Shown here piece after piece: positions 17,962-61,739 of a stretch of DNA of 64,000 nucleotides. Numbering within the stretch: the first letter of the stretch is position 1; each line of letters begins with the position of its first letter. This stretch comes from Ranitomeya imitator (taxonomy: Eukaryota), in NCBI RefSeq assembly GCF_032444005.1, contig NC_091283.1, positions 23,870,001 through 23,934,000 of the forward strand. The letters are read 5' to 3'. The notes beneath the pieces were generated by a model that had not been told where the DNA came from, searched no databases, and was given only the letters and a program-made list of their open reading frames with translations. The position numbers and the translations under genes were made by a program.

Positions 17962-18312
<351 letters not shown>

Positions 18313-23886: not shown

Positions 23887-24013
23887 TATATTTGATACAT
23901 GATACACACCTGGTGCATAGACACATATACTACTTACATATATGGTACATATGCACATTACACATAAATGTGACACACACACACACTACAATATATGATG
24001 CCCCCATGTTTAC

Positions 24014-24182
24014 CTGCTGATCAGGCTGCTTCCTCCCAACCACGCGGTACGACTGGCCCCCTGCGCTGTAGTAGAGCTGGACTCGGCTGTGTCCGGCGGG
24101 CCCAGTCCCAGCATTGATCCATTTCTTACTGGAATCATCATAGACCATGACGGTGGCTCTGGCCGTGATCACCGGTGTCTCA
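24014..24182 (-). CDS. vasp: VASP exon 2: EVH1 domain N-terminal half
   Basis: SETPVITARATVMVYDDSSKKWINAG...YRVVGRKQPDQQ; ctctgcag|T ... CAG|gtaaac, phase 2 to 0. Confidence 0.97.
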
Positions 24183-24399
24183 CTGCAGAGAAGAGGAAGA
24201 CGATGAGCAAAGAAATTCATGACTACCACCCCCACTACAACTCCCAGCATCTCCTGATATGCCGGAGGGACACAACACACTCCATCAGCGTTGTGGTGTC
24301 CCACCCTGTGGACGCAAAGTCACATCAGAGCCGTTATCAGGTGTAATTGGGGGGGGCTCTATATACATGTATGTATGTACACCCCTGGCCGGACACCAG

Positions 24400-29200: not shown

Positions 29201-29625
29201 ACACCACCATCTACTCTACAGAAAGTCCAAATCCACACGGAAAATATTTATAACTACTTTTCAGGCCGACACCGACCAATCACAGCGCAGATTTCATTAA
29301 TCTTCCCAAAGATTCTGCACAGCAGCCGGATCCCAAAATACGAGGGACACACAGGTTTGTGCAGGTCTAAAGGGGCTAAAATCCAAATAAAGCCCTGGGG
29401 AGACACAGGCCTGAGACTCTACAGTGACCCCTGGCGGTTGGTTGGGTGAACTGCACTTACAGATGACAGCTGACACTCTAGAGTGGAACAGACCCTGCAG
29501 AGGGCAGGAGAGGCGCCATCTTCTGAAACCAATTGGTCACACTCAGAAATACAGACCCACAACCTGCTCATCACATATCACAAAAATTCTTTAATAAAGT
29601 TAAAAGGGAAAAAAAAAAAAAAGTG

Positions 29626-29943
29626 TCATTCTGGTATGAGGCGGATGAGCTGAGCTTCCCCTGGCGCCAGCTGCACGCGGTCCTGGAGCAGCTGACCTCG
29701 GTTATGCTCCGGTTTGGTAGTCAACAATAATCGAACAGAGTTTGAGAAATAAGGAAAATGCAGAGACACATTGTGCGATCGATCAGAAGGACCAATAAGG
29801 ACTAAAAGCGTGGAACAGGCCCAGGAGGATAAAGCGCTGTACGAGGAGCCATTAGATAAACGCTGCAACCAACCGGAGTGGAGCGCGGGGTTCTGGGATC
29901 GCAGGTGGAGAAGAGAACGGAGCCAGGAGGGCGGCGGGAGGGA
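29626..29943 (-). CDS. SLC3A2/4F2hc-like gene, exon 8 (last; C-terminal beta-sandwich domain)
   Basis: ttgtctccacag|TCC, phase 0. SLLHLRSQNPALHSG...LLVL...VRLLLTTKPE...RVQLAPGEAQLIRL* aligns by eye with human 4F2hc LSDQRSKERSLLHG...FLVVL...LLLSTQPG...RLKLEPHEGLLLRF. ATTAAA at 29595-29590. Confidence 0.85.
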   Translation of the reverse strand, partial: SLPPPSWLRSLLHLRSQNPALHSGWLQRLSNGSSYSALSSWACSTLLVLIGPSDRSHNVSLHFPYFSNSVRLLLTTKPEHNRGQLLQDRVQLAPGEAQLIRLIPE

Positions 29944-30029
29944 CTGTGGAGACAACGCAGAAAAAGACGTCAACCGGGGACACGCAGATTATCAGAAAGA
30001 CATTACTATGTAAAAACACCTAATACGTA

Positions 30030-30725
30030 TATATTATAATACTGCCCCCTATGTACAAGAATATAACTACTATAATACTGCCCCTATGTACAAGAATATA
30101 ACTACTATAATACTGCCCCTATGTACAAGAATATAACTACTATAATACTGCCCCTATGTACAAGAATATAACTACTATAATACTGCCCCTATGTACAAGA
30201 ATATAACTACTATAATACTGCCCCTATGTACAAGAATATAACTACTATAATACTGCTCCTATGTACAAGAATATAACTACTATAATACTGCTCCTATGTA
30301 CAAGAATATAACTACTATAATACTGCTCCTATGTACAAGAATATAACTACTATAATACTGCTCCTATGTACAAGAATATAACTACTATAATACTGCCCCC
30401 TATGTACAAGAATATAACTACTATAATACTGCTCCTATGTACAAGAATATAACTACTATAATACTGCTCCTATGTACAAGAATATAACTACTATAATACT
30501 GCCCCTATGTACAAGAATATAACTACTATAATATTGCTCCTATGTACAAGAATATAACTACTATAATACTGCTCCTATGTACAAGAATATAACTACTATA
30601 ATACTGCCCCTATGTACAAGAATATAACTACTATAATACTGCTCCCTATGTACAAGAATATAACTACTATAATACTGCTCCTATGTACAAGAATATAACT
30701 ACTATAATACTGCCCCCTATGTACA
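30030..30725. repeat. 35-bp satellite (tataatactgcccctatgtacaagaatataactac)
   Basis: Visible tandem units, period 35. Confidence 0.95.
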
Positions 30726-31005
30726 GTAAAAGAACCTACTCAAAAGTGAATATATAGAATCCAATATTAGATATATTTAATAATATTATTTTAAAGTAAT
30801 TATTAAACAAGGAGAAGCTGACAGCAAACATCACAGTAAATATAGTACAAAAAGTGGATACATCATAAGGGGCACAGATCCCATAGTATATACAAATATA
30901 ACTAGCTAAATGAATAACCTCCCAAAAATATCCATATATATAAGTACCAGTATAGATGTGATCAGTGACTCCAGCTCCAACGTACGTTTCGCCACTGCGG
31001 CTTTT

Positions 31006-31052
31006 ACAGAGTCCTTGAAAAAGCCGCAGTGGTGAAACGTACGTTGGAGCTG
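31006..31052 (+). ncRNA. Minimal type I hammerhead ribozyme variant, copy 1
   Basis: tcc-UUGAAAA-A-GCC(gcagu)GGU-GAAAC-guac-GUU-gga: core with U3:A8 covariation, stem II, palindromic stem III. Confidence 0.5.
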
Positions 31053-31176
31053 GAGTCACGGATCACATCTATACTGGTACTTATATATATGGATATTTTT
31101 GGGAGGTTATTCAAGTACCAGTATAGATGTGATCCGTGACTCCAGCTCCAACGTACGTTTCGCCACTGCGGCTTTT

Positions 31177-31223
31177 ACAGAGTCCTTGAAAAAGCCACAG
31201 TGGCGAAACGTACGTTGGAGCTG
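31177..31223 (+). ncRNA. Minimal type I hammerhead ribozyme variant, copy 2
   Basis: tcc-UUGAAAA-A-GCC(acagu)GGC-GAAAC-guac-GUU-gga; stem II fully Watson-Crick paired. Confidence 0.55.
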
Positions 31224-32938
31224 GAGTCCCTGGGAGTCACGGATCACTTCTATACTGGTCATTTAGCTAGTTATATTCGTATACACTATGGGATTTGTGC
31301 CCCTTATGATGTATCCACTTTATGTACTATGATCAAATCAGAAAAAGTACCTGCCTAGTCAAGTGGCAATGCTCCAAATAGGTATAATCATCATCCAAAA
31401 GAGCAAATATGAAGCAACATAGCCATAAAATAAGTCAAATTTTATTAGAACACATATCAATACATAAGACAAAAAAGTTTATAAAAACTGGGGCAGAAAA
31501 TATGCAAAAAGAAAAACCACCGTAAGGAAAAATATAATGCAAATACTAAATGTATCGAGGTAATCAATGAAAAAAATATATATATAATGACTTCAATATG
31601 TTAAACTGTACGCACCAGACAAATGTCAGACATGGCAATAGCCTATGCCGTGCAAAAGTGAAAACAGAAGAAAGACCGGCATGCTACATAGTCCCATCAG
31701 ACAGTGTTCACATGTAATACAAAAAATGCAGTAAATCCCTACGGCAAACCAAAATTGGTTAAATAGTACACTGCAGACAGAATATCTAAATATATAATAA
31801 GAAAAAAGTTCTTAAGTAAAATGGAGCCATCCTCAAAAAATATCAAAAAATGTTTATTAACTGTAAGAACTTAGTATGCGCAGCAAATGAACATAGCGAT
31901 AAACCTATGCCTATAATGCAACCAGATGGCTAAACCAGTGTATGCAACTAAGCAGAGAATTTGGAGGGATGATGGGATAAAGCAGCAACCCCTGCTACCA
32001 CCGCTAGGTAATTACTATGGCTGCTTATTTCCCATCGGTTGCACTGCTGCACGTTTAGCCTATGTGACTCTAAACTTAGACGGGTCTTTATCCCATCATC
32101 CCTCCAAATTCTCTGCTTAGTTGCATACACTGGTTTAGCCATCTGGTTGCATTATAGGCATAGGTTTATCGCTATGTTCATTTGCTGCGCATACTAAGTT
32201 CTTACAGTTAATAAACATTTTTTGATATTTTTTGAGGATGGCTCCATTTTACTTAAGAACTTTTTTCTTATTATATATTTAGATATTCTGTCTGCAGTGT
32301 ACTATTTAACCAATTTTGGTTTGCCGTAGGGATTTACTGCATTTTTTGTATTACATGTGAACACTGTCTGATGGGACTATGTAGCATGCCGGTCTTTCTT
32401 CTGTTTTCACTTTTGCACGGCATAGGCTATTGCCATGTCTGACATTTGTCTGGTGCGTACAGTTTAACATATTGAAGTCATTATATATATATTTTTTTCA
32501 TTGATTACCTCGATACATTTAGTATTTGCATTATATTTTTCCTTACGGTGGTTTTTCTTTTTGCATATTTTCTGCCCCAGTTTTTATAAACTTTTTTGTC
32601 TTATGTATTGATATGTGTTCTAATAAAATTTGACTTATTTTATGGCTATGTTGCTTCATATTTGCTCTTTTGGATGATGATTATGTACTATGATGTTTGC
32701 GGTCAGCTTCTCCTTGTTTAATAATTCTATTTAATAACATTCTGATACTTGGATTCTATATATATTCACTTTTGAGCAGGCTCTTAGATTTTTTTATAGT
32801 GAATATTACTTATTTAGGCGAGTTCCTCACTGAGTGGTTTGTTTGCCCCATGTACAGTGTTGTTCCCACTATGATATCTTTTTCAGCCATGTGATAATGT
32901 CTCGGTACTTCTGATGTGGTGACCCCGGGGTGACACAC

Positions 32939-33025
32939 CTGGCTCAGGGACAGGATGACGGTTCCGGGGAGGGTTACAGCCAGGAATTGTCTCAACTCCA
33001 GAGACTCAATGTCATCGGGCGTCAC
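32939..33025 (-). CDS. SLC3A2-like exon 7: VTPDDIESLELRQFLAVTLPGTVILSLSQ
   Basis: ttttctgcag|GTG ... CAG|gtgtgt, phase 0 to 0. TLPGT motif is conserved in GH13 enzymes and SLC3 proteins (human LFTLPGTPVFS). Confidence 0.85.
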
Positions 33026-33085
33026 CTGCAGAAAATAAGCGGTTACTTTATGACGTGCCCTTCCCCTCCCCCGGTCCCCACTCAC

Positions 33086-33227
33086 CTCCCAGGCCATATC
33101 CTTCATGGCTGACCCCATAGCGAACGGTTGCAGGTTCCAGTCAGGTAGAGGACAGGTGCGCAGAAGTTGGGACTTATTTTTGGGTGCGTCCTCATCGTCA
33201 CACAGCCAATTAGGAAGCAGGATCAGC
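33086..33227 (-). CDS. SLC3A2-like exon 6: (R)LILLPNWLCDD...MKDMAWE
   Basis: ataattag|G ... GAG|gtgagt, phase 2 to 0. Same position and phase as the recalled human R|LLIAG...CSWS| exon. Confidence 0.72.
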
Positions 33228-33296
33228 CTAATTATAGAGTTTTGTTAGAGCGTTTTCTTTTGTGTGGACACGTCACTGCGATTACTCGGTTGTCAC

Positions 33297-33346
33297 CTTT
33301 CCTCCTCGCTGGCGATTTCTACTTCTTTCAGGAGGATCTGAGAGAT
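33297..33346 (-). CDS. SLC3A2-like exon 5: ISQILLKEVEIASEEE(R)
   Basis: ttttggcag|ATC ... AAG|gtgac, phase 0 to 2. SEEER|LIL parallels human SEDR|LLI. Confidence 0.75.
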
Positions 33347-33529
33347 CTGCCAAAATCAAGACATATCGTAGTCACCGACTATAGTGCAAGTGTCCACATG
33401 TGACATCAGATCAGAAGGAGTCACAGCCCCACCCCCTGGTGATGACATCAGAAATGAGACCACACCCCTTATACTACACCCCGCCCCCATCTATCACTGC
33501 TGACAACCTGCCTGTATATTATGTGTGAG

Positions 33530-33920
33530 GTTGTCACATAGCCCCGCCCCCTGGTGATGACATCACTGATCTAATGACGTCATCAGGCATGAGACCACAC
33601 CCCTTATACTCCAGCACTGGCCTATCATCTACCAGGCTGTATACTGTGTGAGGTTGTCAGCCCCACCCCCTGGTGATGACATCACTGATCTAATGACGTC
33701 ATCAGGCATGAGACCACACCCCTTATACTCCAGCACTGGCCTATCATCTACCAGGCTGTATACTGTGTGAGGTTGTCAGCCCCACCCCCTGGTGATGACA
33801 TCACTGATCTAATGACGTCATCAGGCATGAGACCACACCCCTTATACTCCAGCACTGGCCTATCATCTACCAGGCTGTATACTGTGTGAGGTTGTCAGCC
33901 CCGTCCCCTGGTGATGACAT
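33530..33920. repeat. 119-bp tandem repeat (~3.3 copies) containing TGACGTCA
   Basis: Period 119. CRE palindromes at 33575, 33694 and 33813. Confidence 0.9.
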
Positions 33921-34275
33921 CACAGTTGTCAGCCCCGCCCCTGAGGTACTAGTGCTCACAGTCCCTCATTTCCCCTCTCACCATCATTACAGTGGTTTTC
34001 TTGTCACCTAAAAGCTGGAACCCAGATGCTCCATCTTCCATCCAGCTCCGGGCAGAGTCCTGCACAAGAGGGGTTCAAGTTACTAAGAATGAGGGTCCCC
34101 AGCGCTGGGGTGTGGAGGCGGCCGGTGACAGGTGTGGCTGATGACAGACATTTTATAGTAGCTGCTGGGGGTAGTAGTAATATCTACAGTTCTCACTCTA
34201 CAGTAGAAAAGCCCGCAGTCCGGGCACAGAACCTTCATCCCTGTGCCACACATTCACAGTTTCTCCGATACTCAC

Positions 34276-34329
34276 CTCATGCTCTCCCATCTGTAGGAAA
34301 GACTGATCATTACTGACACACGAGGGATC
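34276..34329 (-). CDS. SLC3A2-like exon 4: DPSCVSNDQSFLQMGEHE (a NAGNAG acceptor could add Q)
   Basis: ttccttcagcag|GAT ... GAG|gtgagt, phase 0 to 0. The donor is strong; the acceptor choice is inferred. Confidence 0.55.
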
Positions 34330-35336
34330 CTGCTGAAGGAACGAGCGGGGTTCTTTACCGCAACAGCAGAAAGGCCACGATGGTTCATTCATGTGAATGC
34401 GTAAAATAGAAGAGCGCCCCCTACCGGAGGATTGAAGGGCCATACATCCACAGTTTATCCATGATGACCCATCCTCTCCTCTCCTGCAGGGTCCTCTCCT
34501 CTCCAAACAGCTTGTCTGCTCTTACAGTAAAGACAACTGTCCATTTCTGGAAACAGAACCTTCATCCTTCCAACAGGAGGAGGCGCTCGCATCGTCTGAG
34601 AAGACAGAGTATCACAATAAATACAGGACGGGTCATTTCTATAGTGGCTCAGATTTATCTTCTCCTCAGACGCCTCTTCTTAACGCTAAACCCAAGTAAT
34701 TCCCCCGATTATCTCTAACCGTCTCCGGCCACCCGTCAGTTTGGATATTCTTTGCGCCATCTCCAGATGAAGAGACGCTCAGTTATAAAGTGCTGACAAT
34801 ACGGTGCCACGTGTGCGTTTTATAGGGGTGTCCGGGTTTCCTGTCTGAATGGAGCAGAGAACAGCTGCAGATATCTGGACCTGAGCCCCTAATAAGAGTG
34901 GCCGCCTTTAGAAGCAGCTGCCTGACGCTGAGCTCCCTGGACAGCGGAGCCGCACACTGCAGAGCTTTTGGCCAAGTTTCCACAATGAGTTTTTGACGCT
35001 GCAGATTTTCTGCACCAATTACAGAAATTAGGTTCATGAGGTTTTTAAATTACATTTTTTTTCAGCTGCACTTATTTGATCCCTGTGGTCAGGTGGTAAA
35101 TCAACTGCTTTGTGCTGAAACGTCCCCGCTAATTAGTAGTGATAAAACATTATTGATAAAGTCATGTGCAGATAAGTGGTGTTTTTTTTTTGTTTTTTTA
35201 AGCCATCTCCTAAAAGTTGATTTAGAAAATCCACAAAAGGAAGACAAGAAAAAGAAACAAGTGTGAACAGAGTCTTACATTCTCTCCCCACAATCTCATG
35301 TATAAACCTCTCCCATAGACTGTAGGACATCATCAC

Positions 35337-35404
35337 CTTCAGCCTCTGGACTTGATGGCCGTCATACTCCTCCAGTATCTGGACCTCCAGGATGATGCGG
35401 AGAC
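35337..35404 (-). CDS. SLC3A2-like exon 3: (G)LRIILEVQILEEYDGHQVQRLK
   Basis: catgttcccag|GT, phase 1. GLRIILEV parallels human SIRVILDL. Donor AAG|gtgatg chosen because it restores phase 0, as in the recalled human TKVK| boundary. Confidence 0.68.
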
Positions 35405-35464
35405 CTGGGAACATGAAGACCACAGAGGTGATCAAGACTCTGGGCCTCGTCACTCAGCGCAGCC

Positions 35465-36905
35465 GTATAGACCTCCACGCCAGACACAGAATGCCACACC
35501 AGACAGACCTCCACGCCAGACACAGAATGCCACACCAGACAGACCTCCACGCCAGATATAGAATGCCACGCCGTACACAGACCATGCCGCACAGAATGCC
35601 ACACCAGACAGACCTCCACGCCATACACAGACCACCACGCCAGACACAGAATGCCACGCCATACACAGACCACCACGCCAGACACAGAACACCACGCCGC
35701 ACAGAATGCCACACCAGACAGACCACCACGCCATACACAGAATGCCACACCAGACAGACCACCACGCCATACACAGAATGTCACACCAGACAGACCACCA
35801 CGCCATACACAGAATGCCACACCAGACAGACCACCACGCCATACACAGAATGCCACACCAGACAGACCACCACGCCATACACAGAATGTCACACCAGACA
35901 GACCTCCACGCCATACACAGAATGCCACACCAGACAGACCACCACGCCATACACAGAATGCCACACCAGACAGACCACCACGCCATACACAGAATGCCAC
36001 ACCAGACAGACCACCACGCCATACACAGAATGTCACACCAGACAGACCACCACGCCATACACAGAATGCCACACCAGACAGACCACCACGCCATACACAG
36101 AATGCCACACCAGACAGACCACCACGCCATACACAGAATGCCACACCAGACAGACCTCCACGCCATACACAGAATGCCACACCAGACAGACCACCACGCC
36201 ATACACAGAATGCCACACCAGACAGACCACCACGCCATACACAGAATGTCACACCAGACAGACCTCCACGCCATACACAGAATGCCACACCAGACAGACC
36301 ACCACGCCATACACAGAATGCCACACCAGACAGACCACCACGCCATACACAGAATGCCACACCAGACAGACCACCACGCCATACACAGAATGTCACACCA
36401 GACAGACCACCACGCCATACACAGAATGCCACACCAGACAGACCACCACGCCATACACAGAATGTCACACCAGACAGACCACCACGCCATACACAGAATG
36501 CCACACCAGACAGACCTCCACGCCATACACAGAATGCCACACCAGACAGACCACCACGCCATACACAGAATGCCACACCAGACAGACCACCACGCCATAC
36601 ACAGAATGCCACACCAGACAGACCACCACGCCATACACAGAATGTCACACCAGACAGACCTCCACACCGTACACAGACCACCACGCCATACACAGAATGT
36701 CACACCAGACAGACCTCCACACCGTACACAGACCACCACGCCATACACAGAATGTCACACCAGACAGACCTCCACACCGTACACAGACCACCACGCCATA
36801 CACAGAATGTCACACCAGACAGACCTCCACACCGTACACAGACCACCACGCCATACACAGAATGTCACACCAGACAGACCGCCACGCCATACACAGACCG
36901 CCACA
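35465..36905. repeat. 36-bp minisatellite (cacaccagacagaccaccacgccatacacagaatgc)
   Basis: Visible tandem units; fills intron 2 of the SLC3-like gene. Confidence 0.95.
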
Positions 36906-36914
36906 TGCACTTAC

Positions 36915-37031
36915 CGTATCTTTGCCCCTCGGTCACCTGACCTCTCACACTCCCGTTAGTCACCTCCTCATGGGCGACAATGAGACCCCCACACCCCAGA
37001 GATGACGCCTCTCGTATTCTGTGCGACACAT
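36915..37031 (-). CDS. SLC3A2-like exon 2: (D)VSHRIREASSLGCGGLIVAHEEVTNGSVRGQVTEGQRY
   Basis: gtcttacag|AT ... ACG|gtaagt, phase 1 to 1. RIREASSLGCGGLIV parallels human RLDYLSSLKVKGLVL. Confidence 0.82.
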
Positions 37032-37207
37032 CTGTAAGACATGGGGGGCAAGAGATGGGTAGAGGGGACAGGTCAGCCTGCAGCCACATAAGGCACGTTC
37101 TCCACATGCTGGGAGTTGTAGTTTCACGTCATCCAGAGAGCATCACCAACCCAAGATCCCTGCCCCCTCCGTCACACACGGCAGTGGGGGTCCCACATAT
37201 AACTCAC

Positions 37208-37418
37208 CGGTCTGTGGCGCCAGTCCTGCGATGCGGCAGATCACTCGGCGTTGGTGCCACGTGCTGGGTGGTGGTGGCACGTACGCCCGGGCGAGAATGG
37301 CGATGGCAGAACTAAGCAGCGCAGCCAGTAATATCCAGAAGAGCAGCAGCAGCCCCCGCCGTACGCACACCCAGCCGCGGGCGTCCTGCTCGGGCCTCAG
37401 GAGCGGCTGGGACTCCAT
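37208..37418 (-). CDS. SLC3A2-like exon 1: short cytoplasmic tail, single transmembrane helix and neck
   Basis: Strong Kozak ggagacATGG. GWVCVRRGLLLLFWILLAALLSSAIAILARA...WHQRRVICRI parallels 4F2hc GWVRTRWALLLLFWLGWLGMLAGAVVIIVRA...WWHTGALYRI. Donor CCG|gtgagt, phase 1. Confidence 0.88.
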
Positions 37419-37853
37419 GTCTCCCCGGCTGCGTCTCCTCCTACAGATCTTATACTTTGGTATTTGCTGACCAGAAAATCACCACAAAGTGTGAAGAGGA
37501 GTGTCACATTCTACATCCACCATCGTCGCCCCACCCGAGGCCACAACGGGGTCCGGGCAACAGACCAACCTCCGTACAATCACAGTACCACCAAAAATGG
37601 CACAAAAAACCCTGCAAAATTGTGCACCCAATCTACAAAAGCAGGTACCTGATAAGTCAGTGGCCAGCCGTGCATAACTAGAAACCCACAATAATGGCGG
37701 CCGCCTCGTTGGGGAATGGCTAGTTGAGCGGTTTCCAGACACCGCAGGCGCTGATCTCTGCTAACAGCTGCCACCTCCAAACACACTGAGGCCATGATCC
37801 AGGGCGCAGCGAGGGTTAAATGTGAGCCCAGGTGAAGCTGCAGTGGTGATCAC

Positions 37854-37993
37854 CTGGACCGGGCGGGGGAGGCCTCCATGATGATTCCTGTGGTTTCCAT
37901 GGAGACGTGGTGATCATGGGGGTCACGATTATAGTCACCACAGTCTGACGGATCCTGATCAAAATCACCCTCATCATCCTCGTCCCGCTGCAT
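37854..37993 (-). CDS. Tentative upstream acidic exon of the SLC3A2-like gene (MQRDEDDEGDFDQD...)
   Basis: Open acidic frame ending CCAG|gtgatc (phase 2). Splicing to the AG before 37440 is in frame with ATG 37418, but that acceptor has a weak pyrimidine tract. Confidence 0.3.
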
Positions 37994-38402
37994 CTGGTCT
38001 TCATGATTTGTTACTTATTGTCTTGTGATTTCAATTTTTTTTTCTTCTTTAGTAAAATATTTGGAAAGCTGCTTTGTGATCACTGTAACAAAATCGCCAC
38101 ATGTGAATAAAAACCGCACATGGAGAACTATAAATATGGCCGCCTTTATGGATTGTATGTGTGGGTGGGGTGTGGCCGCTTTTTGTTACAGCATGGCTTC
38201 ATATCCATAAGCTGCATTCACACCAGTAGCACGGCGGCCATGACGGTGGGAAAACAACAGAAATAATGGCAGCTACATTGGATGCCACATTACTGAGGTA
38301 CAATAGGAGGAGAGTGCAGTATACAGCACAGAGCAGCATATGGCGCCATACCCAGGCCCCCAACACTGCACAGTACAGATCCATAATGGTGAGGGGTCAA
38401 TT

Positions 38403-41400
38403 TGTATGACTGTAGTATGGCGGCGCGGAGACGAAGGATTGTAATATAGCGGTGCGGAGACGTATGATTGTAGTATAGAGGTGTGGAGACGTATGATTGT
38501 AGTATAGCGGTGCGGAGACGTAGGATTGTAGTATAGAGGTGCGGAGACGTATGATTGTAGTATAGAGGTGCGGAGACGTAGGATTGTAATATAGCGGTGC
38601 GGAGACGTAGGATTGTAGTATAGAGGTGTGGAGACGTATGATTGTAGTACAGCGGTGTGGAGACGTATGATTGTAGTATAGCGGTGTGGAGACGTATGAT
38701 TGTAGTATAGCGGTGTGGAGACGTATGATTGTAGTATAGCGGTGTGGAGACGTATGATTGTAATATAGCGGTGTGGAGACGTATGATTGTAGTATGGTGG
38801 TGTGGAGACGTAGGATTGTAGTATAGCGGTGTGGTGACGTATGATTGTAATATAGCGGTGTGGAGACGTAGGATTGTAGTATAGCGGTGTGGAGACGTAC
38901 GATTGTAGTATAGAGGTGTGGAGACGTATGATTATAATATAGCGGTGTGGAGACGTATGATTGTAGTATGGCGGTGTGGAGACGTATGATTGTAGTATAG
39001 CGGTGTGGTGACGTATGATTGTAATATAGCGGTGTGGAGACGTAGGATTGTAGTATAGCGGTGTGGAGACGTACGATTGTAGTATAGAGGTGTGGAGACG
39101 TATGATTATAATATAGCGGTGTGGAGACGTATGATTGTAGTATGGCGGTGTGGAGACGTATGATTGTAGTATAGAGGTGTGGAGACGTATGATTGTAATA
39201 TAGCGGTGTGGTGACGTATGATTGTAGTATGGCGGTGTGGAGACGTATGATTGTAGTATAGCGGTGTGGAGACATATGATTGTAGTATAGCGGTGTGGTG
39301 ACGTATGATTGTAGTATGGTGGTGTGGTGACGTATGATTGTAGTATGGCAGTGACGTATGATTGTAGTATGGCGGTGTGGTGACGTATGATTGTAGTATG
39401 GCGGTGTGGTGACGTATGATTGTAGTATGGCGGTGACGTATGATTGTAGTATGGCGGTGTGGTGACGTATGATTGTAGTATGGCGGTGTGGAGATGTATG
39501 ATTGTAGTATAGCAGTGTGGAGACGTAGGATTGTAGTATAGAGGTGTGGAGACGTAGGATTGTAGTATAGAAGTGTGGAGACGGATGATTGTAGGAAAGC
39601 GGTGTGGAGACGGATGATTGTAGTATAGAGGTGTGGAGACGGATGATTGTAGGAAAGCGGTGTGGAGACATATGATTTTAGCATAGCGGGGTGGAGACGT
39701 ATGATTATATTATAGCGGTGTGAAGACGTAGGATTGTAGTATAGTGGTGCGAAGACGTAGGATTGTAGTATATCGGTGTGGTGAAGTATGATTGTAGTAT
39801 AGAGGTGTGGAGACGTATGATTGTAGTATAGCGGTGTGGAGACGTATGATTGTAGTATAGCGGGGCGAAGACGTAGGATTGTAGTATATCGGTGTGGTGA
39901 AGTATGATTGTAGTATAGAGGTGTGGAGACGTATGATTGTAGTATAGAGGTGTGGAGACGTAGGATTGTAGTATAGCGGTGTGGTGACGTATGATTGTAG
40001 TATGGCGGTGTGGAGACGTATGACTGTAGTATGGTGGTGTGGAGACGTATGATTTTAGCATAGCAGGGTGGAGACGTATGATTGTAGTATAGCAGTGTGG
40101 AGACGTATGACTGTAGTATAGCAGTGTGGAGATGTATGATTGTAGTATAGAGGTATGGAGACGTATGATTGCAGTATAGCGTTGTGGAGACGTATGAGTG
40201 AAGTATAGCAGTGTGGAGATGTATGATCGCATTATAGCGGTGACGTATGATTGTAGTATAGAGGTATGGAGACGTATGATTGCAGTATAGCGTTGTGGAG
40301 ACGTATGAGTGAAGTATAGCGTTGTGGAGACGTATGACTGTAGTATAGCAGTGTGGAGATGTATGATCGCATTATAGCGGTGACGTTTGATTGTAGTATA
40401 GCGTTGTGGAGACGTATGATTGCAGTATAGCGGTGCAGTGATGTATGATTGTAGTATAGCGGTGCAGTGATGTATGATTGTAGAATAGCGGTGCAGTGAT
40501 GTATGATTGTAGTATAGTGGTGTGCAGATATCTGGTGACAGGATTGTGGGGTGAAGACGTATGACTGTAGTATAGTGGTGTGGAGTTGTATGATTGTAGT
40601 ATAGTGGTGTGGAGACGTATGATTGTAGCATGGCGTTGTGGAGACGTATGATTGTAGTATGGCGGTGTGGAGACGTATGATTGTAGTATGGCGGTGTGGA
40701 GACGTTTGATTGTAGTATGGCTGTTTGTAGACGTATGGTGGTGTGGAGTCCTATGATTGTAGTATGGCGGTGTGGAGTCCTATGATTGTACTATAGCTGT
40801 GACGTATGATTGTAGTATAGCGATGTGGAGACGTATGATTGTAGTACAGTGGTGACGTATGATTGTAGTATGGCAGTGTGGAGTCGTATGATTGTAGTAT
40901 GGCAGTGTGGAGTCGTATGATTATAGTATAGCGGTGGGGAATCCTATGATTGTACTATAGCGGTGATGTATGATTGTAGTATAGCGATGTGGAGACGTAT
41001 GATTGCAGTATAGGGTTGTGTAGACATATGATTGTAGTATTGCAGTGTGGAGATGTATGATTGCAGTATAGCGGTGACCTATGACTGTAGTATAGCGTTG
41101 TGGAGACGTATGATTGTAGATTAGCAGTATGATTTTAGTATAGCAGTGTGGAGACTTATGATTATAGTATAGCGGTGTGGAGTCGTATGATTGCAGTATA
41201 GCGTTGTGGAGACGTAGGATTGTAGTACAGCGGTGTGGTGACGTATGATTGTAGTATAGCGGTGACGTATGATTGTAGTATAGCGGTGTGGAGTTGTATG
41301 ATTATAATATAGCGGTGTGGAGTCCTATGATTGTAGTATACCGGTGACGTATGATTGTAGAATAGCGGTGTGGAGTCGTATGATTGTAGTATAGCGGTGA

Positions 41401-44400
41401 CATATGATTGTAGTATAGCGGTGTGGAGACGTATGACTGTAGTATAGCAGTGACGTATGATTGTAGCATAGTGGTGTAGAGACGTATGATTGTATAGCGG
41501 TGTGGAGACGTATGATTGTAGTATAGCGATGTGGAGACGTATGATTGTAGTATAGCGGTGTGGAGACGTATGAATGTAATATAGCGGTGTGGAGTCGTAT
41601 GATTGTAGTATAGCGGTGTGGAGTCCTATGATTGTAGTATAGCGGTGATGTATGATTGTAGTATAGCGGTGTGGAGTCCTATGATTGTAGTATAGCGGTG
41701 ACGTATGATTGTAGTATAGCGGTGTGGAGATGTATGATTGTAGTATAGCGGTGACATATGATTGTAGTATAGTGGTGTGGAAACGTATGATTGTAGTATA
41801 GCGGTGTGGAGACGTATGACTGTAGTATAGCAGTGACGTATGATTGTAGCATAGTGGTGTGGAGACGTATGATTGTAGTATAGCGGTGTGGAGACGTATG
41901 ATTGTAGTATAGCGATGTGGAGACGTATGATTGTAGTATAGCAGTGACGTATGATTGTAGTATAGCGGTGTGGAAACGTATGATTGTAGTATAGCGATTT
42001 GGAGTCGTATGATTCTAGTATAGCGGTGACATATGATTGTAGTATAGCGGTGTGGAGACGTATGAATGTAATATAGCGGTGTGCAGTCGTATGATTATAG
42101 TATAGCGGTGTGGAGTCCTATGATTGTAGTATAACGGTGACGAATGATTGTAGTATAGCGGTGTGGAGTCCTATGATTGTAGTATAACGGTGACGAATGA
42201 TTGTAGTATAGCGGTGTGGAGTCCTATGATTGTAGTATAGCGGTGACGTATGATTGTAGTATAGCGGTGTGGAGATGTATGATTGTAGTATAGCGGTGAC
42301 ATATGATTGTAGTATAGCGGTGACGTATGATTATACTATAGGGGTGTGGAGTCGTATGATTATAGAATAGCGGTGTGGAGTCGTATGATTGTAGTATAGC
42401 GGTGACGTATGATTGTAGAATAGCGGTGTGGAGTCCTATGATTGTAGTATAGCGGTGACGTATGATTGTAGTATAGCGGTGTGGAGATGTATGATTGTAG
42501 TATAGCGGTGACATATGATTGTAGTATAGTGGTGTGGAAACGTATGATTGTAGTATAGCGGTGTGGAGACGTATGACTGTAGTATAGCAGTGACGTATGA
42601 TTGTAGCATAGTGGTGTGGAGACGTATGATTGTAGTATAGCGGTGTGGAGACGTATGATTGTAGTATAGCGATGTGGAGACGTATGATTGTAGTATAGCA
42701 GTGACGTATGATTGTAGCATAGTGGTGTGGAAACGTATGATTGTAGTATAGCAGTGTGGAAACGTATGATTGTAGTATAGCGATTTGGAGTCGTATGATT
42801 GTAGTATAGCGGTGACATATGATTGTAGTATAGCGGTGTGGAGACGTATGAATGTAATATAGCGGTGTGGAGTCGTATGATTATAGTATAGCGGTGTGGA
42901 GTCCTATGATTGTAGTATAACGGTGACGTATGATTGTAGTATAGCGGTGTGGAGTCCTATGATCGTAGTATAGCGGTGACGTATGATTGTAGTACAGCGG
43001 TGTGGAGATGTATGATTGTAGTATAGCGGTGACATATGATTGTAGTATAGCGGTGACGTATGATTATACTATAGGGGTGTGGAGTCGTATGATTACAGAA
43101 TAGCGGTGTGGAGTCGTATGATTGTAGTATAGCGGTGACGTATGATTATAGTATAGAGGTGTGGAGTTCTATGATTGTAGTATAGCGGTGACGTATGATT
43201 ATAGTATAGAGGTGTGGAGTTCTATGATTGTAGTATAGCGGTGACATATGATTGTAGTATAGCGGTGTGGAGTCATATGATTGTAGTGGTGACGTATGAC
43301 TGTAGTATAGCGGTGTGGAGTCGTATGATTATAGAATAGCGGTGTGGAGTCGTATGATTGTATTATAGCGGTGACATATGATTGTAGTATAGCGGTGACG
43401 TATGATTATAGTATAGAGGTGTGGAGTAGGGTTGAGCAAAACGGATCGGACAAATTCAAAAATCGCCGACTTTCGGTAAAGTTGGGCTTCATGAAACCCG
43501 ACCCGATCCTAGTGTGGGATCGGCCATGCGGTCGGCGATCTTCACGCCAAAGTCACGTTTTGTATGACGCGTTCAGCGCCATTTTTCAGCCAATGAAGGA
43601 GCGTGAGCAGCATGATGACATAGGTCTCAAGGGCGTGAACGCCTATCGCCAGTGCTGTAGCGATTTGCAATGTGCAACATCAGCTTTTCTGTGGAGAGAG
43701 AGAGAGAGAGAGAGAGATTTCCCATTGACTTGCATTGGGTTTCGTGTTTCGGTCGAACCCCGACTTTTCGCGATAATCAGCCGATTTCACTTGACTCGAC
43801 TTTTGAGAAAGTCGGGTTTCGCGAAACCCAACTCGATCTTAAAAAAGTTAAAGTCGCTCAACCCTAGTGTGGAGCCCTATGATTGTAGTATAGTGGGGAC
43901 GTATGACTGTAGTATAGCGGTGTGGAGTTGTATGATTATAGAATAGTGGTGTGGAGTCGTATGATTGTATTATAGCGGTGACATATGATTGTAGTATAGA
44001 GGTGTGGAGTCCTATGATTGTAGTATAGCGGTGACGTATGATTATAGTATAGAGGTGTGGAGTCCTATGATTGTAGAACAGCGGTGACGTATGATTGTAG
44101 AATAGCGGTGTGGAGTCCTATGATTGTAGTATAGTGGTGACGTATGATTGTAGTATAGCGGTGTGGAGATGTATGATTGTAGTATAGCCGTGACATATGA
44201 TTGTAGTATAGCGGTGACGTATGATTATAGTATAGGGGTGTGGAGTCGTATGATTGATGTATAGCGGTGTGGAATCCTATGATTGTAGTATAGCGGTAAC
44301 ATATGATTATAGTATAGAGGTGTGGAGTCCTATGATTGTAGTATAGTGGTGACATATGACTGTAGTATAGCGGCGACATATGACTGTAGTATAGCGGCGT

Positions 44401-46990
44401 GGAGTCGTATGATTATAGAATAGCAGTATGGAGTCGTATGATTGTAGTATAGCGGTGTGGAGTCGTATGATTATAGAATAGCGGTGTGGAGTTGTATGAT
44501 TGTAGTATAGCGGTGACATATGATTGTAGTATAGCAGTGACGTATGATTATAGTATAGTGGTGTGGAGTCCTATGATTGTAGTATAGAGGTGACATATGA
44601 TTCTAGTATAGCGGTGACGTATGATTATAGTATAGTGGTGTGGAGTCCTATGATTGTAGTATAGCGGTGACATATGATTCTAGTATAGCGGTGATGTATG
44701 ATTATAGTATAGTGGTGTGGAGATGTATGATTGTAGTATAGCGGTGACATATGATTGTAGTATAGCGTTGACATGATTCTAGTATAGCGGTGACGTATGA
44801 TTATAGTATAGTGGTGTGGAGATGTATGATTGTAGTATAGCGGTGACATATGATTGTAGTATAGCGGTGACATATGATTCTAGTATAGCGGTGACGTATG
44901 ATTATAGTATAGTGGTGTGGAGATGTATGATTGTAGTATAGCGGTGACATATGATTGTAGTATAGCGGTGACATGATTCTAGTATAGCGGTGACGTATGA
45001 TTATAGTATAGTGGTGTGGAGATGTATGATTGTAGTATAGCGGTGACATATGATTGTAGTATAGCGGTGACGCTATGATTCTAGTATAGCGGTGACGTAT
45101 GATTATAGTATAGTGGTGTGGAGATGTATGATTGTAGTATAGCGGTGACATATGATTGTAGTATAGCGGTGACATATGATTCTAGTATAGCGGTGACGTA
45201 TGATTATAGTATAGTGGTGTGGAGATGTATGATTGTAGTATAGCGGTGACATATGATTGTAGTATAGCGGTGACATATGATTCTAGTATAGCGGTGACGT
45301 ATGATTATAGTATAGTGGTGTGGAGATGTATGATGGTAGTATAGCGGTGACGTATGATTATAGTATAGCGGTATGGAGTCGCATGATTGAAGTATAGCGG
45401 TGACATATGATTGTAGTATAGAGGTGTGGAGTCGCATGATTGAAGTATAGCGGTGACGTATGATTGTAGTATAGAGGTATGGAATCGCATGATTGAAGTA
45501 TAGCGGTGACATATGATTGTAGTATAGAGGTGTGGAGATGTATGATGGTAGTATAGCGGTGACATATGATTGAAGTATAGCGGTGACATATGATTGTAGT
45601 ATAGAGGTGTGGAGATGTATGATGGTAGTATAGCGGTGACATATGATTGAAGTATAGCGGTGACGTATGATTATAGTATAGTGGTGTGGAGATGTATGAT
45701 GGTAGTATAGCGGTGACATGATTGTAGTATAGCGGTGACATATGATTGTAGTATAGCGGTGACGTATGATTATAGTATAGTGGTGTGGAGTCCTATGATT
45801 GTAGTATAGAGGTGACATATGATTCTAGTATAGCGGTGACGTATGATTATAGTATAGTGGTGTGGAGTCCTATGATTGTAGTATAGCGGTGACATATGAT
45901 TCTAGTATAGCGGTGATGTATGATTATAGTATAGTGGTGTGGAGATGTATGATTGTAGTATAGCGGTGACATATGATTGTAGTATAGCGTTGACATGATT
46001 CTAGTATAGCGGTGACGTATGATTATAGTATAGTGGTGTGGAGATGTATGATTGTAGTATAGCGGTGACATATGATTGTAGTATAGCGGTGACATATGAT
46101 TCTAGTATAGCGGTGACGTATGATTATAGTATAGTGGTGTGGAGATGTATGATTGTAGTATAGCGGTGACATATGATTGTAGTATAGCGGTGACATGATT
46201 CTAGTATAGCGGTGACGTATGATTATAGTATAGTGGTGTGGAGATGTATGATTGTAGTATAGCGGTGACATATGATTGTAGTATAGCGGTGACGCTATGA
46301 TTCTAGTATAGCGGTGACGTATGATTATAGTATAGTGGTGTGGAGATGTATGATTGTAGTATAGCGGTGACATATGATTGTAGTATAGCGGTGACATATG
46401 ATTCTAGTATAGCGGTGACGTATGATTATAGTATAGTGGTGTGGAGATGTATGATTGTAGCATAGCGGTGACATATGATTGTAGTATAGCGGTGACATAT
46501 GATTCTAGTATAGCGGTGACGTATGATTATAGTATAGTGGTGTGGAGATGTATGATGGTAGTATAGCGGTGACGTATGATTATAGTATAGCGGTATGGAG
46601 TCGCATGATTGAAGTATAGCGGTGACATATGATTGTAGTATAGAGGTGTGGAGTCGCATGATTGAAGTATAGCGGTGACGTATGATTGTAGTATAGAGGT
46701 GTGGAGATGTATGATGGTAGTATAGCGGTGACATATGATTGAAGTATAGCGGTGACATATGATTGTAGTATAGAGGTGTGGAGATGTATGATGGTAGTAT
46801 AGCGGTGACATGATTGTAGTATAGCGGTGACATATGATTGAAGTATAGCGGTGACATATGATTGTAGTATAGAGGTGTGGAGTCGCATGATTGAAGTATA
46901 GCGGTGACATATGATTGTAGTATAGCGGTGACATATGATTGTAGTATAGAGGTGTGGAGTCGCATGATTGTAGTATAGCGGTGTGCAGAC
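38403..46990. repeat. ~8.6-kb 29/24-bp minisatellite (gtatgattgtagtatagcggtgtggagac)
   Basis: Visible tandem units filling the interval between the divergently transcribed SLC3-like gene and RTN2. Confidence 0.96.
43427..43866. mobile_element. hAT-type MITE (440 bp) inserted in the minisatellite
   Basis: TIRs TAGGGTTGAGC / GCTCAACCCTA; 8-bp TSD GTGTGGAG at 43419-43426 and 43867-43874. Confidence 0.88.
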
Positions 46991-47230
46991 GTCTGATGAC
47001 AGGACTGTGGGGTGGAGCGGTCCCTTGTCTCTCTTGCTGTTGGTCCATGAATGGCTGTGTGCAGTCATTTCCTGCCCCCTCTCAGGCCTTTGTCTGCTGC
47101 GCTCGCTCCTCCCTGTGTTTGTGAGTTGTGTGTGTCAGGTTGCTCCACAATGAGATGCTAGGCAGGGAGACAACACGCTGTGGGGTGCGCTCGTGTGGGT
47201 CTGTATGGGTGTCACCGGCAGACAGCGGAT

Positions 47231-47261
47231 ATGGGACACGTCCTGTCGTTCACACACTGCA
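47231..47261 (+). CDS. rtn2: RTN2 exon 1: MGHVLSFTHC
   Basis: ATGGGACACGTCCTG...TGCA|gtaagt, phase 1. Matches the RTN2 N-terminus MGxVL..F.HC|K. Confidence 0.9.
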
Positions 47262-47464
47262 GTAAGTGTCGCCTGCTGTATCATTGTGTGTCGCTGCGAG
47301 TGCAGGTGCGGCGTCTCCTCCATCATTGTCTATTATGTAGGGGCTGCATATGGGTGTATCCTATAGAGAGCGAGCGTGGCGTCCTCGTGTGACGGTCACG
47401 CAGATTATCACATGTCATGTGCGACCGTCACACTACTACAGTAGAATCTGATGCTCTGACTGTA

Positions 47465-50400
47465 CTAGCGGTGAGTGTACATATATATCTGTGTATTAGT
47501 GGTGCCGTGTGTATATATCTGTGTATTAGTGGTGCCGTGTGTATATATCTGTGTATTAGCTCTGCTGTGTGTATATATCTGTGTATTAGCGGTGCTGTGT
47601 GTATATATCTGTGTATTAGCTCTGCTGTGTGTATATATCTGTGTATTAGTGGTGCCGTGTGTATATATCTGTGTATTAGTGGTGCCGTGTGTATATATCT
47701 GTGTATTAGCGGTGCCGTGTGTATATATCTGTGTATTAGTGGTGCCGTGTGTATATATCTGTGTATTAGTGGTGCCGTGTGTATATATCTGTGTATTAGC
47801 GGTGCTGTGTGTATATATCTGTGTATTAGTGGTGCCGTGTGTATATATCTGTGTATTAGTGGTGCCGTGTGTATATATCTGTGTATTAGTGGTGCCGTGT
47901 GTATATATCTGTGTATTAGTGGTGCCGTGTGTATATATCTGTGTATTAGTGGTGCCGTGTGTATATATCTGTGTATTAGCGGTGCTGTGTATATATATCT
48001 GTGTATTAGTGGTGCTGTGTGTATATATCTGTGTATTAGCTCTGCTGTGTGTATATATCTGTGTATTAGTGGTGCCGTGTGTATATATCTGTGTATTAGC
48101 TCTGCTGTGTGTATATATCTGTGTATTAGTGGTGCTGTGTGTATATATCTGTGTATTAGCTCTGCTGTGTGTATATATCTGTGTATTAGTGGTGCCGTGT
48201 GTATATATCTGTGTATTAGCGGTGCTGTGTGTATATATCTGTGTATTAGTGGTGCCGTGTGTATATATCTGTGTATTAGCTCTGCTGTGTGTATATATCT
48301 GTGTATTAGCGGTGCTGTGTGTATATATCTGTGTATTAGCGGTGCTGTGTGTATATATCTGTGTATTAGCTCTGCTGTGTGTATATATCTGTGTATTAGC
48401 TCTGCTGTGTGTATATATCTGTGTACTAGCGGTGCTGTGTGTATATATCTGTGTATTAGCTCTGCTGTGTGTATATATCTGTGTATTAGCTCTGCTGTGT
48501 GTATATATCTGTGTATTAGCTCTGCTGTGTGTATATATCTGTGTATTAGCTCTGCTGTGTGTATATATCTGTGTATTAGCTCTGCTGTGTGTATATATCT
48601 GTGTATTAGCTCTGCTGTGTGTATATATCTGTGTATTAGCTCTGCTGTGTGTATATATCTGTGTATTAGCTCTGCTGTGTGTATATATCTGTGTATTAGC
48701 GGTGCTGTGTGTATATATCTGTGTATTAGCGGTGCTGTGTGTATATATCTGTGTATTAGCTCTGCTGTGTGTATATATCTGTGTATTAGTGGTGCTGTGT
48801 GTATATATCTGTGTATTAGCTCTGCTGTGTGTATATATCTGTGTATTTGTGGTGCCGTGTGTATATATCTGTGTATTAGCGGTGCTGTGTGTATATATCT
48901 GTGTATTAGTGGTGCCGTGTGTATATATCTGTGTATTAGCTCTGCTGTGTGTATATATCTGTGTATTAGCTCTGCTGTGTGTATATATCTGTGTATTAGC
49001 TCTGCTGTGTGTATATATCTGTGTATTAGTGGTGCCGTGTGTATATATCTGTGTATTAGCTCTGCTGTGTGTATATATCTGTGTATTAGCTCTGCTGTGT
49101 GTATATATCTGTGTATTAGTGGTGCCGTGTGTATATATCTGTGTATTAGCTCTGCTGTGTGTATATATCTGTGTATTAGCTCTGCTGTGTGTATATATCT
49201 GTGTATTAGCTCTGCTGTGTGTATATATCTGTGTATTAGCTCTGCTGTGTGTATATATCTGTGTATTAGCTCTGCTGTGTGTATATATCTGTGTATTAGC
49301 GGTGCCGTGTGTATATATCTGTGTATTAGCTCTGCTGTGTGTATATATCTGTGTATTAGTGGTGCCGTGTGTATATATCTGTGTATTAGCTCTGCTGTGT
49401 GTATATATCTGTGTATTAGTGGTGCCGTGTGTATATATCTGTGTATTAGCTCTGCTGTGTGTATATATCTGTGTATTAGCTCTGCTGTGTGTATATATCT
49501 GTGTATTAGCTCTGCTGTGTGTATATATCTGTGTATTAGCGGTGCTGTGTGTATATATCTGTGTATTAGCTCTGCTGTGTGTATATATCTGTGTATTAGC
49601 TCTGCTGTGTGTATATATCTGTATTAGCGGTGCTGTGTGTATATATCTGTGTATTAGCGGTGCTGTGTGTATATATCTGTGTATTAGCTCTGCTGTGTGT
49701 ATATATCTGTGTATTAGCTCTGCTGTGTGTATATATCTGTGTATTAGCTCTGCTGTGTGTATATATCTGTGTATTAGCTCTGCTGTGTGTATATATCTGT
49801 GTATTAGTGGTGCCGTGTGTATATATCTGTGTATTAGCTCTGCTGTGTGTATATATCTGTGTATTAGCTCTGCTGTGTGTATATATCTGTGTATTAGCTC
49901 TGCTGTGTGTATATATCTGTGTATTAGCGGTGCTGTGTGTATATATCTGTGTATTAGCGGTGCCGTGTGTATATATCTGTGTATTAGCTCTGCTGTGTGT
50001 ATATATCTGTGTATTAGCTCTGCTGTGTGTATATATCTGTGTATTAGCTCTGCTGTGTGTATATATCTGTGTATTAGCTCTGCTGTGTGTATATATCTGT
50101 GTATTAGCTCTGCTGTGTGTATATATCTGTGTATTAGCTCTGCTGTGTGTATATATCTGTGTATTAGCTCTGCTGTGTGTATATATCTGTGTATTAGCTC
50201 TGCTGTGTGTATATATCTGTGTATTAGCTCTGCTGTGTGTATATATCTGTGTATTAGCTCTGCTGTGTGTATATATCTGTGTATTAGCTCTGCTGTGTGT
50301 ATATATCTGTGTATTAGCTCTGCTGTGTGTATATATCTGTGTATTAGCTCTGCTGTGTGTATATATCTGTGTATTAGCTCTGCTGTGTGTATATATCTGT

Positions 50401-53400: not shown

Positions 53401-53865
53401 ATTAGCTCTGCTGTGTGTATATATCTGTGTATTAGCTCTGCTGTGTGTATATATCTGTGTATTAGCTCTGCTGTGTGTATATATCTGTGTATTAGCGGTG
53501 CTGTGTGTATATATCTGTGTATTAGCGGTGCTGTGTGTATATATCTGTGTATTAGCTCTGCTGTGTGTATATATCTGTGTATTAGCTCTGCTGTGTGTAT
53601 ATATCTGTGTATTAGCTCTGCTGTGTGTATATATATGTGTATTAGCTCTGCTGTGTGTATATATCTGTGTATTAGCTCTGCTGTGTGTATATATCTGTGT
53701 ATTAGCGGTGCTGTGTGTATATATCTGTGTATTAGCTCTGCTGTGTGTATATATCTGTGTATTAGCTCTGCTGTGTGTATATATCTGTGTATTAGCTCTG
53801 CTGTGTGTATATATCTGTGTATTAGCTCTGCTGTGTGTATATATCTGTGTATTAGCGGTGCTGCC
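47465..53865. repeat. ~6.4-kb homogeneous 30-bp minisatellite (gtgtattagctctgctgtgtgtatatatct), RTN2 intron 1
   Basis: About 210 units with ctct/cggt/tggt variants. Confidence 0.97.
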
Positions 53866-53923
53866 TGTGTGTTTGTAAAAATTAGCGTCTATGGTAATGA
53901 AGCAGTAAATTAGCTCAAGTACC

Positions 53924-54260
53924 TGTGTGGGGGCGGTGCCTGTGTGGGGGCGGTGCCTGTGTGGGGGCGGTGCCGTGCAGGTGCCTGTGTGGGGGCGGTG
54001 CCTGTGTGGGGGCGGTGCCTGTGTGGGGGCGGTGCCGTGCAGGTGCCTGTATGGGGGCGGTGCCTGTGTGGGGGCGGTGCCGTGCAGGTGCCTGTGTGGG
54101 GGCGGTGCCTGTGTGGGGGCGGTGCCGTGCAGGTGCCTGTGTGGGGGCGGTGCCTGTGTGGGGGCGGTGCCGTGCAGGTGCCTGTGTGGGGGCGGTGCCT
54201 GTGTGGGGGCGGTGCCGTGCAGGTGCCTGTATGGGGGCGGTGCCTGTGTGGGGGCGGAGC
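53924..54260 (+). repeat. G-rich 17-bp repeat (gtgggggcggtgcctgt)
   Basis: Visible tandem GGGGG-containing units. Confidence 0.92.
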
Positions 54261-54351
54261 CTGCATGGAGGCGGTTGGACTCGTGCATTCAAATAAAACT
54301 TACCCCCAAATTATCCAAATTGTGCCTGTAATGTCTGTGTTTCTCCTGCAG

Positions 54352-54402
54352 AGGACGCTCCATCCACTGCCTCCAGCACCCCGGACTCCTGCCCTCCAGA
54401 TG
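54352..54402 (+). CDS. rtn2: RTN2 exon 2: KDAPSTASSTPDSCPPD
   Basis: ctcctgcag|AG ... ATG|gtaaag, phase 1 to 1. Human equivalent KEAPSTASSTPDS. Confidence 0.92.
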
Positions 54403-54645
54403 GTAAAGACTCCATGTGTATGTGTGTCCTCTAAACTAGTCACATGACATGCACTATTGATTTGTAGCCCCGCCCCTTCTTAGTGGCCCCTCAGCTCACG
54501 TTTTCAAAAACTTTCAGGTAAAATGAAAGCTGCACTGTGATTGGTTGCTCTGGGCACCAATGGCCGCTGTACTGACAGATGAGGGCCTGTCATGAAGCCA
54601 CATGGTCAGTGCCGCTCTGATTCTACCATCTTGTCTTTGTTGTAG

Positions 54646-61735: not shown

Positions 61736-61739
61736 TTAA

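Follow-up and report, generated by a model that had tools for sequence, protein, structure and literature searches.

Reviews present SLC3 as a family of two proteins, rBAT and 4F2hc, each of which is defined by a disulfide bond to an SLC7 light chain (PMC8478756, PMC8537225). The transmembrane (TM) helix of 4F2hc packs against the light chain (PMC8537225). Cysteine mutants of 4F2hc/y+LAT, with Cys-to-Ser heavy chains, are reported to keep the light-chain interaction (PMC5983779). Here we describe a gene on the minus strand of a 64,000-nucleotide stretch of Ranitomeya imitator DNA (contig NC_091283.1, positions 23,870,001 to 23,934,000, referred to as the window). It lies between VASP and RTN2, and its product is almost certainly a real member of the 4F2hc/SLC3A2 lineage of GH13-like heavy chains. 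The protein is a membrane-anchored, non-catalytic, probably glycosylated 4F2hc-like scaffold that is expressed and constrained, and such a conserved, expressed gene would be a third SLC3 protein type. We found no literature on this gene or on any third SLC3 gene, and 'SLC3A3' occurs solely as a typo for other genes.

The protein is composed of a 16-aa cytoplasmic tail, an SLC3A2-type juxtamembrane and TM segment, a proline-rich neck, a minimised non-catalytic barrel and a β-sandwich C-domain. It shares with 4F2hc (CD98hc, SLC3A2) the type II topology, the SLC3A2_N-type W-V-x-x-R..L-L-L-L-F-W signature, N-glycosylation sequons, a (β/α)8 barrel without domain B followed by a β-sandwich C-domain, and the lack of a catalytic nucleophile. 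Nevertheless, the two proteins are only ~20% identical, and the frog protein is much shorter (356 aa against 529–630 aa). Only about 16 residues are left of the cytoplasmic tail, the barrel takes ~210 aa instead of ~325 aa with its loops trimmed, and the ectodomain is ~110 aa shorter. The neck reads A-Y-(V/E)-P-P-P in place of the cysteine, and the ectodomain carries its own set of five invariant cysteines. The position of the gene between RTN2 and VASP is different as well, and it has so far been found in frogs only. rBAT (SLC3A1) belongs to the same superfamily with the same topology, and its fold matches with Z 18.3 and E 6e-10; however, the frog protein has none of the following rBAT features: domain B, the Ca2+ site, the conserved catalytic triad, the C-terminal disulfide hairpin and the neck cysteine. 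GH13 α-glucosidases and α-amylases resemble it in the barrel and C-domain fold (Z 18–20) and in the DUF3459 match on the C-domain. Unlike these enzymes, it has a TM anchor, lacks a PF00128 match and shows Leu or Ser at the nucleophile position. An active GH13 enzyme was dismissed: strand β4 carries DG(A/V)SGF-x-L-(L/S), with no nucleophile Asp in any frog; the catalytic positions of β5 and β7 could not be mapped reliably.

When the PDB is searched with a profile made from ten frog proteins, human 4F2hc chains are retrieved at E 7e-13, with an alignment that extends from the juxtamembrane W-V-x-x-R across the barrel and then covers the C-domain separately. GH13 sucrose isomerases come next at E 0.01, and no rBAT chain appears in this search at E ≤ 1. 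4F2hc chains are also on top in phmmer for the N-terminal and TM segment. Pfam matches fall on two exons, SLC3A2_N on exon 1 and DUF3459 (GH13 C-domain) on exon 8, the latter at 25.7 bits, over the cut-off of 22; PF16028 is precomputed by the database on three frog orthologues. In the hidden Markov model (HMM) alignment to human 4F2hc, the TM-start motif is paired, strand β3 LRIILEV is placed on IRVILDL, EEER/LIL on SEDRLLI, and the C-terminal L.L.P.E..L.R is aligned. These motifs had been listed in a preliminary description of the locus made from the sequence alone. A fifth entry of that list, the TLPGT correspondence, was not reproduced by HMMER, and residues 215–300 give only chance matches in the PDB. 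Exon 8 alone finds no match in the PDB or in a length-restricted word search. The juxtamembrane and TM stretch is about half identical to human 4F2hc, as against ~20% overall. The nearest ESM Atlas clusters are SLC3A2 (0.95).

The structure was predicted by AlphaFold2 with 15 frog sequences as input. The model contains a TM helix at residues 10–46, eight β/α units between residues 59 and 268, and a β-sandwich at residues 285–353. There is no domain B; the β3–α3 connection has six residues. In Foldseek, ranks 1–15 are all 4F2hc chains (E 7e-15 to 8e-11), before GH13 enzymes and rBAT (E 6e-10). VIA-align superposes the model on human and mouse 4F2hc with Z 20–21 and a root-mean-square deviation of 3.6–4.9 Å over 286–325 residues at 20–21% identity, while other GH13 proteins reach Z 18–20 with identities of 12–17% only. 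Swiss-Prot SLC3A2 entries come on top in the AlphaFold Database (AFDB) search. The trimmed TIM barrel of the preliminary description is upheld.

The neck shows the most distinct feature of the frog protein. Human 4F2hc R-A-P-R-C aligns with R-A-Y-(V/E)-P of frogs. Heavy chains have a neck cysteine a few residues past the TM helix that forms the SLC7 disulfide; the first cysteine of the frog protein, C61, is inside the predicted β1 strand. The ectodomain cysteines 61, 84, 184, 200 and 294 are invariant across frogs and are unmatched in the human 4F2hc alignment. Cys184 and Cys200 flank an exposed, low-confidence loop that bears the sequon N192. The other sequons are N96, N282 and N309, which confirms the number of four given previously. 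The sequons and the five invariant ectodomain cysteines fit an extracellular glycoprotein.

The spliced coding sequence has eight exons and comprises 1071 nt (356 aa). The product is identical to RefSeq XP_069611533.1, "uncharacterized protein isoform X1 [Ranitomeya imitator]". RefSeq thus already contains a model of the gene, and new here are the assignment to the 4F2hc lineage, the frog-wide presence, the minimal architecture and the loss of the hallmark cysteine. The preliminary description, which suggested an 'uncharacterised heavy-chain-like subunit', is corrected in this respect, although the RefSeq entry gives no family name. The eight GT-AG-joined, stop-free exons of the preliminary description (1047 nt, 348 aa) could be reproduced, and exons 1, 2, 3, 5, 6, 7 and 8 are base-exact. 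Exon 4 was misplaced. Its former position at 34329–34276 (54 nt) was ruled out, with neither homology nor any RNA joint there, and tblastn with five frog orthologues places the true exon 4 at 34059–33982 (78 nt, 26 aa; AG/GT, phase 0/0). The intron phases 1,1,0,0,2,0,0 are unchanged by this correction, whereas the length of 348 aa is replaced by 356 aa. The notion that one exon is absent also fails, as nothing is missing beyond loop trimming. The coordinates of all exons are summarized in Table 1. Two introns contain tandem repeats: intron 2 has about 40 copies of a 36-nt unit (35469–36905, 89% matches), which creates long spurious open reading frames (ORFs) in several frames on both strands, and intron 4 has 3.3 copies of a 119-nt unit (33522–33923).

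Transcription was followed in contigs of four public RNA runs from three studies, placed on 29420–35410. The joints 29943/32939, 33227/33297, 33346/33982 and 34059/35337 are spliced (CT..AC, that is, minus-strand GT..AG) in all four runs. The joint 33025/33086, over a 60-nt intron, is found in two runs, and this intron is retained in one run. Three runs have a loose contig end at 35405 with the final bases of exon 2, in support of the exon 2–3 junction. No joint occurs at 34329 or 34276 in any of the four runs, where the region is covered by low-depth unspliced contigs alone. The exon 1–2 junction lies outside the RNA coverage and is based on the RefSeq model and on conservation in Eleutherodactylus coqui. 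The corrected junctions are thus matched exactly, and the gene is transcribed and spliced. RNA contigs terminate at 29568–29623, 20-odd bases beyond ATTAAA (29590–29595). At window position 29868 (plus strand) all four runs have G where the assembly has A, a synonymous change of a Leu codon in exon 8 that is probably a polymorphism. Intron 7 contains a 35-nt tandem repeat (30035–30725, 19.6 copies, 97% identity). RNA contigs matching this repeat reach summed depths of 10^3 to 10^4 in each run, so that the unit must be part of a very abundant or multi-copy family of transcribed repeats located elsewhere in the genome.

Exon 7 is skipped in two runs (joint 29943/33086), which equals RefSeq isoform X2 (327 aa). 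The same exon is missing from isoform X2 of Ascaphus, and the skip is annotated in R. imitator, R. variabilis and Ascaphus. Such alternative splicing may be conserved, and with the β8 strand (AVTLPGT) lost it would disrupt the barrel. In E. coqui isoforms, exons 5 and 6 are skipped instead of exon 7.

The gene is distributed widely among frogs. phmmer with exon 8 against 1.84 billion representative proteins retrieves seven frog proteins (E 1e-58 to 2e-14), and orthologues with intact ORFs cover at least 13 genera ranging from Ascaphus to dendrobatids: Ranitomeya (two species), Dendrobates, Anomaloglossus, Eleutherodactylus, Dendropsophus, Hyla, Leptodactylus, Engystomops, Pseudophryne, Hyperolius, Staurois, Rhinophrynus and Ascaphus. 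Every orthologue is labelled 'uncharacterized' or 'hypothetical' in databases. No orthologue from a salamander, caecilian, fish or amniote was detected in the phmmer scan and the word-indexed searches, methods that are blind even to SLC3A2 from this query. No Xenopus protein turned up in any search, which does not prove its absence. The gene tree separates Ascaphus and Rhinophrynus from Neobatrachia and contains Ranoidea, Hyloidea, hylids and dendrobatids as groups; none of the terminal branches is long. Such agreement with the frog species tree is what vertical inheritance of a single-copy gene would produce. In E. coqui the same eight exons are present, with lengths of 220, 117, 68, 78, 50, 142, 87 and 318, and only exon 1 differs. 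The RefSeq models of Dendrobates tinctorius (464 aa) and E. coqui (397 aa) have N-terminal extensions of ~100 aa upstream of the conserved MES(Q/M)PLL start. These extensions have little in common beyond a short motif right before the start and are probably over-extended ORFs through the 5' untranslated region (UTR).

Ascaphus and Ranitomeya are 45% identical, and the frog alignment has 28 invariant columns. By the Nei-Gojobori method, the R. imitator and E. coqui genes, the one species pair compared, give a nonsynonymous rate (dN) of 0.206, a synonymous rate (dS) of 0.637 and a ratio (omega) of 0.32. The ratio is 0.31 in the tail and TM region, 0.39 in the barrel and 0.24 in the C-domain. The frog gene is under purifying selection, somewhat relaxed. 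It is conserved from Ascaphus to dendrobatids and almost certainly single-copy and functional. The preliminary reading of the locus as an intact, very divergent SLC3 heavy-chain-like gene, probably other than the SLC3A2 orthologue, is borne out by the profile search, Pfam on two exons, the fold, RNA, selection and conservation.

These observations are probably best explained by a functional, frog-wide gene of the 4F2hc lineage that encodes a type II membrane glycoprotein, for which a non-covalent ancillary transporter subunit is the likeliest role. This mechanism, with an SLC7-type carrier as the partner, is slightly less than an even proposition. In such a complex the TM helix would dock against a 12-TM transporter of SLC7/LAT type. 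The protein would then act as 4F2hc does, as an ancillary subunit for trafficking or stabilising the putative carrier, and the complex would be held non-covalently, the disulfide cysteine being gone. Docking is proposed because the best likeness to 4F2hc is in the juxtamembrane and TM stretch, the helix that packs against the light chain in 4F2hc, and the interaction reportedly kept by Cys-to-Ser heavy chains (PMC5983779) speaks for it as well. The same stretch argues against the main rival, a less likely one, in which the gene has left the transporter-chaperone role and its product is a neofunctionalised surface glycoprotein (a receptor, an adhesion- or integrin-modulating, lectin-like or decoy protein) that uses the 4F2hc fold only as a scaffold. 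Such a change would suit the loss of the neck cysteine in every frog examined, the trimming of the barrel loops by ~110 aa relative to the 4F2hc ectodomain and the fast evolution seen between Ascaphus and Ranitomeya. The five invariant cysteines, including Cys184 and Cys200 in the exposed loop, hint at a new disulfide pattern or partner. 4F2hc, too, acts independently of transporters, for example in integrin signalling and cell fusion (PMC8537225). The frog sequence, however, gives no pointer to a specific alternative function.

Several results weigh against the ancillary-subunit reading or the family assignment on which it is built. None of the nine frog sequences with a known N-terminus, Ascaphus included, has a cysteine between the TM helix and β1, and much has been trimmed from those ectodomain surfaces with which 4F2hc touches its light chains. 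SLC3A2_N scores 26.5 bits on exon 1 (E 5e-6), 0.5 bit under its cut-off of 27, and Pfam PF00128 has no match in the protein. The AlphaFold2 model is of moderate confidence (mean predicted local distance difference test (pLDDT) 65, predicted template modelling score (pTM) 0.61), with residues 187–219 below 50. The omega of 0.32 is fairly relaxed, and the RNA runs are coded and carry no tissue labels. Some of these features, namely the shortened ectodomain, the lost hallmark cysteine and an omega that is not very low, together with the frequent exon-skipped and intron-retaining transcripts, could also be read as those of a transcribed relic, that is, an expressed pseudogene or decaying non-functional copy. 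This is highly improbable. The ORF is intact and the exon structure is identical in lineages whose separation dates back to the beginning of crown frogs; each of the three regions has an omega far below 1, the 28 invariant columns and five invariant cysteines are kept, and the gene tree follows the species tree without long terminal branches. A pseudogene was rejected on omega and conservation.

For the origin of the gene, two histories may be considered. It could well be a DNA-level copy of SLC3A2 that was inserted between RTN2 and VASP in the frog stem and diverged fast, rather than an ancient vertebrate paralogue. This agrees with the frog protein being nearer to SLC3A2 than to SLC3A1, and with only frog proteins being retrieved by phmmer from the 1.84 billion representatives and by two word-indexed searches. 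The same searches miss even true SLC3A2, so equally diverged orthologues elsewhere would escape them. Moreover, the RTN2-VASP location would fit an ohnologue: on the human map, RTN2-VASP-OPA3-EML2 (19q13) is probably paralogous to EML3-SLC3A2-RTN3 (11q12-13), and PPM1B adjoins SLC3A1 on 2p21, in parallel to PPM1N between RTN2 and VASP. Candidate short SLC3-like proteins outside frogs exist as leads and also speak against a frog-stem duplicate. These are AFDB A0A3B5MAL9 (359 aa) and A0A444TX35, which has an SLC3-like C-terminal half and is named 'Protein phosphatase 1B'. In zebrafish, si:dkey-202g17.3 on chromosome 15 is listed without data as a fourth SLC3A2-like gene (PMC8478756). As a more tentative suggestion, the gene may be the missing ohnologue of SLC3A2 from the two rounds of whole-genome duplication (2R), an 'SLC3A3' retained by frogs, and perhaps by some fishes, on the RTN2-VASP (human 19q13-type) paralogon and lost by amniotes. 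It would now be a minimal heavy chain that does without the disulfide and has a transporter partner of its own.

The frog protein offers a natural experiment, since it lacks the disulfide, a long cytoplasmic tail and roughly one third of the barrel and still keeps the TM docking motif. It bears on the open question of the purpose of the 'fake glucosidase' ectodomain. If the protein pairs with a carrier, the complex would be a new heteromeric transporter in amphibians, and an origin of the gene as a 2R ohnologue would supply a missing piece of SLC3 family history. The assignment also provides a function-bearing name for a set of frog RefSeq 'uncharacterized protein' entries.

Table 1. Features of the SLC3-like gene and its neighbours in the window
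Feature	Position	Strand	Evidence
Exon 1, coding part (ATG, GT donor)	37208..37418	-	Pfam SLC3A2_N; phmmer to 4F2hc; conserved in E. coqui
Exon 1 content: short cytoplasmic tail, juxtamembrane W-V-x-V-R-R motif	within 37208..37418	-	
TM helix in exon 1	about 37287-37370	-	AlphaFold2 helix 10-46
Proline-rich neck without cysteine in exon 1	about 37245-37286	-	
Exon 2: barrel β1-α1-β2, invariant LGCGGL, sequon N96	36915..37031	-	tblastn; RNA loose end at 35405
Exon 3: β3 strand LRIILEV	35337..35404	-	Joint 35337/34059 in four runs; aligned to 4F2hc IRVILDL
Exon 4, corrected: α3-β4, W..DG.SGF motif, no catalytic Asp	33982..34059	-	tblastn, RefSeq identity, RNA joints
Exon 5	33297..33346	-	Joints 33346/33982 and 33297/33227 in four runs
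Exon 6: LILLP.WLC, sequon N192, loop with invariant Cys184 and Cys200	33086..33227	-	tblastn, RNA
Exon 7 cassette, 87 nt in frame: α7-β8 with AVTLPGT	32939..33025	-	Joints 33086/33025, 32939/29943
Exon 8, coding part and stop: α8, β-sandwich C-domain, sequons N282 and N309	29626..29943	-	DUF3459; phmmer; joint 29943/32939 in four runs
Short 3' UTR with ATTAAA at 29590-29595	29568..29625	-	Sequence and RNA contig ends
OPA3 exon	4895-5284	+	Pfam 82.8 bits
VASP WH1 exons	17962-18312 and 23933-24319	-	Pfam 64 and 33 bits
Reticulon (RTN2) exons	60956-62189	+	Pfam weak, 16-20 bits

The VASP and RTN2 flanks named in the preliminary description are confirmed by Pfam on exons of the window. The annotations of R. 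variabilis and D. tinctorius likewise place a Reticulon gene (head to head) and VASP (downstream, same strand) next to it, so that the locus is RTN2-VASP in three dendrobatids. It differs from the SLC3A2 locus. The order OPA3, VASP, SLC3-like gene and RTN2 mirrors human 19q13.32 except for PPM1N, which in human is located between VASP and RTN2. In 37.5–54.6 kb of the window there is no large, non-repetitive ORF whose Pfam match would make it a PPM1N/PP2C-like gene, and none of PPM1N type is annotated at this interval in the two other dendrobatids. The 17 kb between the gene and RTN2 (37500–54600) is mostly tandem repeats (38.3–40.7 kb and 46.4–47.1 kb). A 203-aa ORF on the plus strand (43335–43943) is without a Pfam match. 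In an RTN2 intron, a long array of ORFs on the minus strand (54900–58100) has a spacing of ~86 nt and represents a large tandem repeat.

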